From NCBI GenBank assembly GCA_037447605.1, contig JBBHKD010000049.1, forward strand, positions 1 to 11,417: 11,417 bases of DNA, written 5' to 3'. The notes under the pieces were generated by a model. It saw only the letters and a list, made by a program, of their open reading frames with translations, had not been told where the DNA came from and searched no databases. This stretch comes from Zygnema circumcarinatum SAG 698-1b (lineage: Eukaryota > Plantae > Zygnematophyceae). Every line of letters begins with the position of its first letter. Positions within the stretch are counted from its first letter, which is position 1. Positions 4,328 to 6,757 of the stretch are shown piece after piece. The position numbers were made by a program, and so were the translations under genes.

Positions 4328-6757
<2,430 letters not shown>

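Follow-up and report, generated by a model that had tools for sequence, protein, structure and literature searches.

Zygnema circumcarinatum SAG 698-1b carries a group I intron near the 3' end of its 18S ribosomal RNA (rRNA) gene, and the loop between the 5' splice site and the guide sequence of this intron contains an 11-nucleotide run that is perfectly antisense to the 3' exon. An earlier reading of the sequence, here called the original prediction, regarded this run as a possible built-in splicing helper, complementary to the 3' strand of helix 45, which is the hairpin that the 3' exon forms in small-subunit (SSU) rRNA. Is the complementarity accidental, or does it serve the intron, and if so, in which process? 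We studied this question in a stretch of 11,417 nucleotides (contig JBBHKD010000049.1; hereafter the window), which contains a eukaryotic, green-lineage ribosomal DNA (rDNA) repeat on the minus strand. Coordinates of the intron and of the rRNA genes refer to that strand. Judging from this sequence and its relatives, the run belongs to a longer tract that is probably a built-in guide, which unfolds the 3' exon and holds it for joining.

The intron occupies 4980..4359, is 622 nucleotides long, and ends in G; its first nucleotide directly follows the AAGGU that ends the 5' exon. It is a bona fide group I intron of the nuclear rDNA subgroup IC1. The Rfam model RF00028 aligns over all of its positions 1-253 with 93.4 bits, where the gathering score is 50, and both hallmarks of subgroup IC1 are found (AAAUUGCGGGAAA in J3/4-P4 and AAGAUAUAGUC in J8/7-P7), together with an extended P5. 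In P1, the exon sequence AAGGU (4985..4981) pairs with the guide sequence GCCUU (4930..4926), which forms the 3' strand of P1 and whose G pairs with the U at the splice site, so that the terminal U of the 5' exon is in a G.U pair. This assignment is based on the sequence and on the comparator introns described below. The 5' strand of P1 can be prolonged into the intron by UUUGCA, the P1 extension, and the combined strand (4975..4985) is complementary to UGC-U-GAAGCCUU.

At the other end, the terminal omega-G (4359) directly precedes UUCCGUAGG. The 3' exon begins UUCCGUAGGUGAACC at 4358, and the exon junction is GUAACAAGGU joined to UUCCGUAGGUGAACC. The insertion follows U1506 (4981), a classical site, and lies immediately 5' of the 5' strand of helix 45; the number 1506 is that of the equivalent base in Escherichia coli 16S rRNA. 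The sequence and the Rfam SSU consensus identify the 3' exon (4328..4358) as the final 31 nucleotides of 18S rRNA, in which nucleotides 1-24 are the helix 45 hairpin and the remainder is the 3' tail. Landmarks read from the exon sequence are UUCCGUA (4352-4358), GAAC (4345-4348), and the partner of the 11-mer (4333-4343).

The 11-mer itself, AUCCUUCCGCA, is located at 4959..4949 (intron nucleotides 22-32) and is the exact reverse complement of UGCGGAAGGAU at 4343..4333 (3'-exon nucleotides 16-26). The perfect run extends on neither side, and the window has no further copy of the 11-mer, even when one mismatch is allowed. Since the guide GAAGCCUU (4933..4926) begins 47 nucleotides into the intron, the 11-mer lies inside a P1 loop of 47 nucleotides. 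When this loop was shuffled 20,000 times, no shuffle contained an 11-nucleotide Watson-Crick run against exon nucleotides 1-30, and the longest run was 10 nucleotides, which occurred 14 times. The complementarity is confirmed as real and non-random. The sequence coordinates bear out what the original prediction had said of it, namely an exact 11-nucleotide match between intron nucleotides 22-32 and 3'-exon nucleotides 16-26, placed between the 5' splice site and the guide in a loop that had been put at about 45 nucleotides; its rough chance estimate of 3e-4 agrees with the shuffles.

The predicted pairing is considerably longer than the 11-mer. If one C.C mismatch and three bulged bases are allowed, duplexfold pairs intron nucleotides 22-50 with exon nucleotides 2-26, which covers both strands of helix 45 and its loop and reaches the UUC/GAA pairing of canonical P10. 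By sequence and duplex energy, the 11-mer (4949..4959) is the distal block of this antisense tract. It is followed by five nucleotides (4944..4948), the first of which, C4948, is mismatched with exon C15, and the others of which, GUUC (4947..4944), are in register with the GAAC at exon nucleotides 11-14. The proximal block, GACACAUGCUGAA (4943..4931), pairs with exon nucleotides 2-10 with bulges, and has an alternative partner in intron nucleotides 1-6, which belong to the P1 extension. At its end, GAA (4933..4931) forms canonical P10 with UUC (4358..4356) directly 5' of the P1 guide strand. The 11-mer is the best-kept core of a tract of ~29 bases that is complementary to nearly all of the 3' exon, and that constitutes a greatly extended P10.

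Folding predictions favor this pairing over helix 45. Duplex energies, which come from a nearest-neighbour model that takes no account of tertiary structure or kinetics, are -18.5 kcal/mol for the 11-mer alone and -27.8 kcal/mol for intron nucleotides 19-50 against exon nucleotides 1-30, and the helix 45 hairpin is predicted at -13.7 kcal/mol; a mature helix 45 context of 33 nucleotides was folded as well. The original prediction had suggested folding the precursor in silico. In a partition-function fold of a 691-nucleotide precursor, the 11-mer helix has a probability of 0.85, versus 0.145 for helix 45, and it is present in both the minimum free energy (MFE) structure and the centroid structure. 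Forcing the 11-mer to be unpaired costs 4.7 kcal/mol and allows helix 45 to re-form. The core of the original prediction, a pairing of this element with the helix 45 3' strand before splicing, is favored by the fold and strongly supported by the conservation, target specificity, and substitution bias presented below, but the prediction underestimated the extent of a pairing that appears to take in exon nucleotides 2-26 and to join P10. Rather than invading a hairpin that has already formed, as was further proposed, the tract may capture the exon during transcription. The functions proposed for the element, namely help in exon ligation and a delay of dimethylation or of site-D cleavage, are hypothetical.

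A separate feature of the P1 loop concerns the formation of P1. The 5' half of the loop (4960..4974) is A-rich, is unstructured as judged from its sequence and a local fold, and carries two copies of CAAAAC. These copies (in the 4962-4985 region) can pair with a GUUUUG that spans the 5' splice site, and the local MFE fold favors this hairpin over P1, of which it is a possible competitor.

The tract was also sought in other introns at the same position (S1506 introns). Public metagenome contigs were searched with a pattern that joins omega-G to the initial 20 bases of the 3' exon and excludes uninterrupted 18S genes; at least 119 loci matched. A 5'-exon anchor is also present in 93 of these, which together with the window intron give 94 sequences. 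The 90 distinct S1506 introns among them are 198-1568 nucleotides long and form 65 k-mer clusters; here and below, counts of loci and clusters refer to the matches listed. Ten comparator loci were tested further, of which eight reach the RF00028 gathering score, and all ten lie between the end of 18S and 5.8S. The J8/7-P7 motif of subgroup IC1 was found in 49 of the 65 cluster representatives. Nearly all comparator introns keep the guide GAAGCCUU. By eye, most have a motif of the kind of GAUCCUUCCGC, GAUUCUUCUG, or GAUCUUUCUG in the segment that leads from the 5' splice site to GAAGCC, and many have GGUUCA just upstream of the guide. The window intron is a cluster of its own, and no close relative of it is among the matches listed: the best blastn matches have 67-77% identity over parts of the intron, and none matches in internal transcribed spacer 1 (ITS1). 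The ITS1 start of one locus (L111) resembles that of the window, but only 7 nucleotides lie upstream of the match.

Complementarity between the P1 loop and exon nucleotides 4-30 was measured as RNAduplex energy and compared with 200 shuffles per intron in the 59 clusters that were scored. The mean energy is -24.1 kcal/mol, versus -13.3 kcal/mol for shuffles. The true loop outperforms all of its shuffles in 30 of the 59 clusters and is equalled by no more than 2 of 200 in 42; in 46, no segment of equal length from the rest of the intron pairs as well as the loop. Introns of 301-700 nucleotides account for most of this signal (no more than 2 shuffles in 200 are as good in 36 of their 41 clusters), whereas among degenerate introns shorter than 300 nucleotides this holds for only 1 of 11 clusters. 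Several of these small introns, of ~200-245 nucleotides (L017, L021, L035, L044, L098, and L102), begin with UU(U)CCUUC(C) and look as if the distal block had shifted to the 5' end of the intron; most of them are below significance in the duplex test.

The complementarity is also directed at one target. When the true 3' exon was ranked among 723 targets, the others being 722 decoy 27-mers from the SSU and large-subunit (LSU) rRNA of the window, it ranked first in 27 of 50 clusters, the window included, and was in the top 1% in 34 of 50. Anchored on the exon, pairing is concentrated on nucleotides 2-3, 5-11, and 14-28. The bases opposite GGAAGG (exon nucleotides 19-24), with the core CCUUCC, are nearly invariant across clusters. 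In many relatives the tract reaches exon nucleotides 28-30, near the 3' end of 18S rRNA, but in the window it stops at nucleotide 26. These comparisons show that the tract is present in most full-size S1506 introns, in many lineages, and that it is specific for the true 3' exon. The first nine nucleotides of intron and exon match at 7 or more positions in 23 of the 65 clusters, a likeness that is expected if the same proximal strand pairs first with the 5' end of the intron, as the P1 extension, and then, as P10, with the exon.

The 3' exon is identical in 117 of the 119 loci, and because it is invariant, two-sided covariation is not visible. Only two of the matches listed (L083, with G24 changed to U, and L104, with A22 changed to C) have a differing distal 3' exon, and both come from AT-rich organisms. 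Covariation was sought in these two loci, and both were found to keep the proximal block (GUUCACCUAU-UGGAA) and to have no distal tract.

One-sided variation can be examined nevertheless. Loops were registered to the perfect antisense by identity alone, and substitutions were then classed as pair-keeping (at C opposite G or A opposite U, where a transition leaves a G.U pair) or pair-breaking (at U opposite A or G opposite C). Transitions in the distal block are found at 36 of 217 pair-keeping and 15 of 186 pair-breaking sites (Fisher p=0.011), and those in the proximal block at 30 of 154 and 11 of 154 (Fisher p=0.002); the Fisher test presumes an independence that the clusters, being related by descent, do not have, so these p-values are indicative only. 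In the core, each of three U residues opposite A is kept in 30-31 of 31 clusters, and C opposite G has changed to U in 0-8 of 31, depending on the position. A cluster of eight close relatives keeps the islands UAAUGAUCUUUCUG and GGUUCAUUUGCUGAAGCC, between which is a variable insert of 0 to ~60 nucleotides. The original prediction had proposed to look for retention or covariation in related S1506 introns, and retention is indeed seen in most full-size clusters, with wobble variation on one side. This pattern strongly supports the view that the complementarity evolves as an RNA-RNA pairing under selection would.

We consider it likely that the tract forms a conserved and unusually long P10, which is in competition with helix 45 and keeps the 3' exon in place for ligation. 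Under this model, the tract, whose A-rich loop has little structure in the local fold, would be transcribed ~570 nucleotides ahead of its target. The 5' strand and loop of helix 45 might be captured by the tract as soon as they are transcribed, or the hairpin, once formed, might be out-competed. Either event would free UUC for canonical P10 beside the guide, and would dock the 3' exon next to P1 for the second step of splicing. After ligation, helix 45 would refold, and ribosome assembly would presumably strip the exon from the intron. The same duplex would serve reverse splicing equally well and could postpone the modification or cleavage that takes place at the 3' end of 18S rRNA, and these roles are mutually compatible.

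Several points weigh against an extended P10 that acts in ligation. The pairing is well supported, but we infer its function from conservation and from a thermodynamic model in which tertiary structure and kinetics are left out. The invariant exon hides two-sided covariation, and the substitution tests assume an independence that the clusters lack. About one third of clusters have no significant tract, mainly those with degenerate introns of less than 300 nucleotides or with very short P1 loops; therefore, the tract is not essential for every S1506 intron. A helix of 25 or more base pairs to the ligated exons could slow product release. Finally, no contig across the spliced joint was found in the read contigs.

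These read contigs are Logan contigs with coded run names, and the intron was found in runs from 7 studies, under two organism labels. Over the intron, contigs from two runs (X2 and X20) agree with the window, except that they are one A shorter in the homopolymers at 4494 and 4594 (A4 and A5). These differences reflect either variation among rDNA copies or assembly error; neither touches the tract, and the 11-mer is unchanged. In run X20, which is possibly RNA, the intron contig has a depth of 226 versus 18,667 for the 5'-exon contig, a contrast that fits intron removal, albeit weakly, as contig depths are unreliable.

Among other explanations, the one that fares best is that the chief role of the tract is to guide homing by reverse splicing, in which a free intron would use its 25 or more antisense nucleotides to find and open the universally conserved 3' end of 18S rRNA in any eukaryote, and that any help in forward splicing is secondary. 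The pairing, specificity, and substitution data apply equally to this idea. Moreover, its target is identical in 117 of the 119 loci among the matches listed, the 65 clusters are diverse and are followed by very different ITS1 starts, and a homing guide would explain why introns at position 1506 are widespread and persistent. Reverse splicing has already been invoked to account for how rDNA introns spread, for example from one to the other of the sites S1506 and S1516 (PMC1299323). However, the tract is constrained within clusters of close relatives and is intact in the intron of this genome across runs, and therefore it presumably has a function in every generation, which would be forward splicing. 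The two roles are mutually compatible. We regard homing as a possible but clearly less likely main purpose of the tract.

A more far-reaching form of this idea, which we hold just as tentatively, is that the tract acts as a universal address label, by which a free S1506 intron could open helix 45 and reverse-splice into the unmethylated pre-18S rRNA of any host, and that in resident introns the duplex acts as a checkpoint, with helix 45 kept unfolded, and hence unmethylated and uncleaved at site D, as long as splicing lasts. Because the tract is antisense to an 18S stretch that is the same in essentially all eukaryotes, the spread of S1506 introns across kingdoms would then be explained. The GAAC of the exon holds the two adenines that are N6,N6-dimethylated in mature 18S rRNA. 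Mature rRNA would then be, we speculate, a poorer partner for the GUUC of the tract than pre-rRNA.

The duplex might alternatively function mainly in maturation, by blocking both Dim1 dimethylation and site-D cleavage until splicing is done, with the excised intron perhaps acting in trans. The pairing covers the adenines of the GAAC loop (4345-4348) and in many relatives extends to exon nucleotides 28-30, as such a checkpoint might require. Against this, the pairing ends at nucleotide 26 in the window, and a simpler role in splicing accounts for the same data, and we think that a checkpoint is improbable as the principal function.

Even less probable is that the main partner of the tract lies inside the intron. 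The local fold pairs CUUCCGCAC with GUGCUGAAG, and a self-folded "anti-helix-45" hairpin of this kind could mask the guide strand. By eye, UUCCGCA of the 11-mer (4949-4955) is also complementary to the P4 5' strand UGCGGGA (~4809-4815), a potential misfold, and it resembles the P4 3' strand AUCCGCAG at ~4570-4577. Either interaction might regulate or misdirect folding. Yet each of these pairings is short and discontinuous, the predicted stability of the exon duplex is much greater, and conservation tracks the exon, also at loop and tail bases for which the intron offers no partner.

Least probable of all is a chance match, or a decaying and functionless relic of an inverted target-site duplication at the DNA level: although a single 11-mer in one window could suggest as much, and UUCCGCA resembles UUCCGUA of the 5' strand of helix 45, the shuffles, the recurrence in most full-size S1506 introns, and the number of clusters, which argues against one recent clone, make this highly implausible. 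The likeness of UUCCGCA to UUCCGUA follows from the tract being antisense to a hairpin, and needs no duplication. An inverted repeat acting at the DNA level was rejected as well, because the wobble-tolerant bias is specific to the sense RNA and places the interaction at the RNA level.

The 5' exon of 18S (4981..6757, ending in AAGGU) was identified with RF01960 (1750 bits) and from its sequence. Rfam scans also detect 5.8S (3982..3830), LSU (3577..241), and the LSU 3' end of the adjacent repeat unit (11417..10104). The LSU 3' ends at 241 and 10104 imply an rDNA repeat length of 9,863 base pairs (bp), so the window exceeds one unit. The intergenic spacer (6758-10103) contains a 74-bp repeat in 2.9 copies (7508-7719) and a GC-rich array of CGCGCC type of ~690 bp (7874-8563).

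Within the intron, the RF00028 alignment assigns 4449..4869 to the catalytic core, from P2.1/P3 to P9. P5 holds an insert of ~200 nucleotides at about 4585-4786, which forms long, P5abc-like hairpins according to the Rfam alignment and the fold, and this extension accounts for the unusual size of the intron. The sequence and MFE fold indicate that peripheral hairpins occupy its 3' end (4359..4448), up to omega-G. Other S1506 introns are larger still, at 1.0-1.6 kilobases (L020, L023, L039, L042, L043, L051, L100, and others). In two of them (L020 and L023), blastn places the guide region 560-580 nucleotides into the intron, implying an insert in the P1 loop. Their size may reflect homing-endonuclease genes or remnants of such genes, which have been reported in red-algal S1506 introns.

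The preferred reading, an extended P10, has partial counterparts among known systems. P10 is a defining but short element of group I introns. The pairing described here has the same polarity, position, and logic, and its proximal UUC/GAA part is an ordinary P10 that shares bases with the P1 extension. Unlike canonical P10, however, it spans ~25 exon bases, is bulged, crosses an inserted hairpin in some relatives, and takes an entire rRNA helix. A review of nuclear group I introns describes P10 as an optional segment and does not mention an extended P10 (PMC3679873).

The nearest described counterpart in the searchable literature is the "PM" pairing, in which the middle of putative group I introns of 63-75 nucleotides, at S1516 of Phialophora, pairs with the 3' exon; it was also suggested that the 3' exon helps in splicing (Harris and Rogers 2011, PMC3160393). 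PM belongs to a minimal intron that is missing most of the core and occurs in one fungal clade, at site 1516. In contrast, the tract reported here is in the P1 loop (nucleotides 22-50) of a full-core IC1 intron of 622 nucleotides, at site 1506 and in many lineages, and so falls outside the definition of PM.

In engineered trans-splicing ribozymes derived from the Tetrahymena intron, the guide is preceded, on its 5' side, by an antisense tract from which an internal loop separates it, and this tract raises affinity and specificity for the substrate. Such extended guides bind the target RNA in trans, downstream of the splice site and in the part that is discarded, whereas the tract in S1506 introns would bind its own 3' exon in cis. 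Woodson and co-workers have reportedly found that alternative rRNA hairpins compete with P1 in Tetrahymena pre-rRNA. There, as we propose here, a contest between an rRNA helix and an intron-exon pairing governs splicing, but the competitor in Tetrahymena is in the 5' exon and is inhibitory, whereas here a dedicated antisense tract of the intron would oppose a helix of the 3' exon. In the searchable literature, we came across no description of a tract in the P1 loop that is complementary to helix 45, and older subscription papers could hold an earlier description.

It is usually stated that a group I intron recognises each of its exons by no more than 4-7 base pairs. The introns of a whole insertion-site lineage now appear to carry a site-specific guide of 25-30 nucleotides, which has to unfold a universally conserved rRNA helix. 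If this is true, S1506 introns would be a natural precedent for the extended guides of engineered ribozymes, both those used for trans-splicing and those that circularise RNA. Their tract would also provide a concrete mechanism that orders splicing and small-subunit folding at the 3' end of 18S rRNA, as well as a testable reason why position 1506 has been so successful as a home for introns in fungi and algae.
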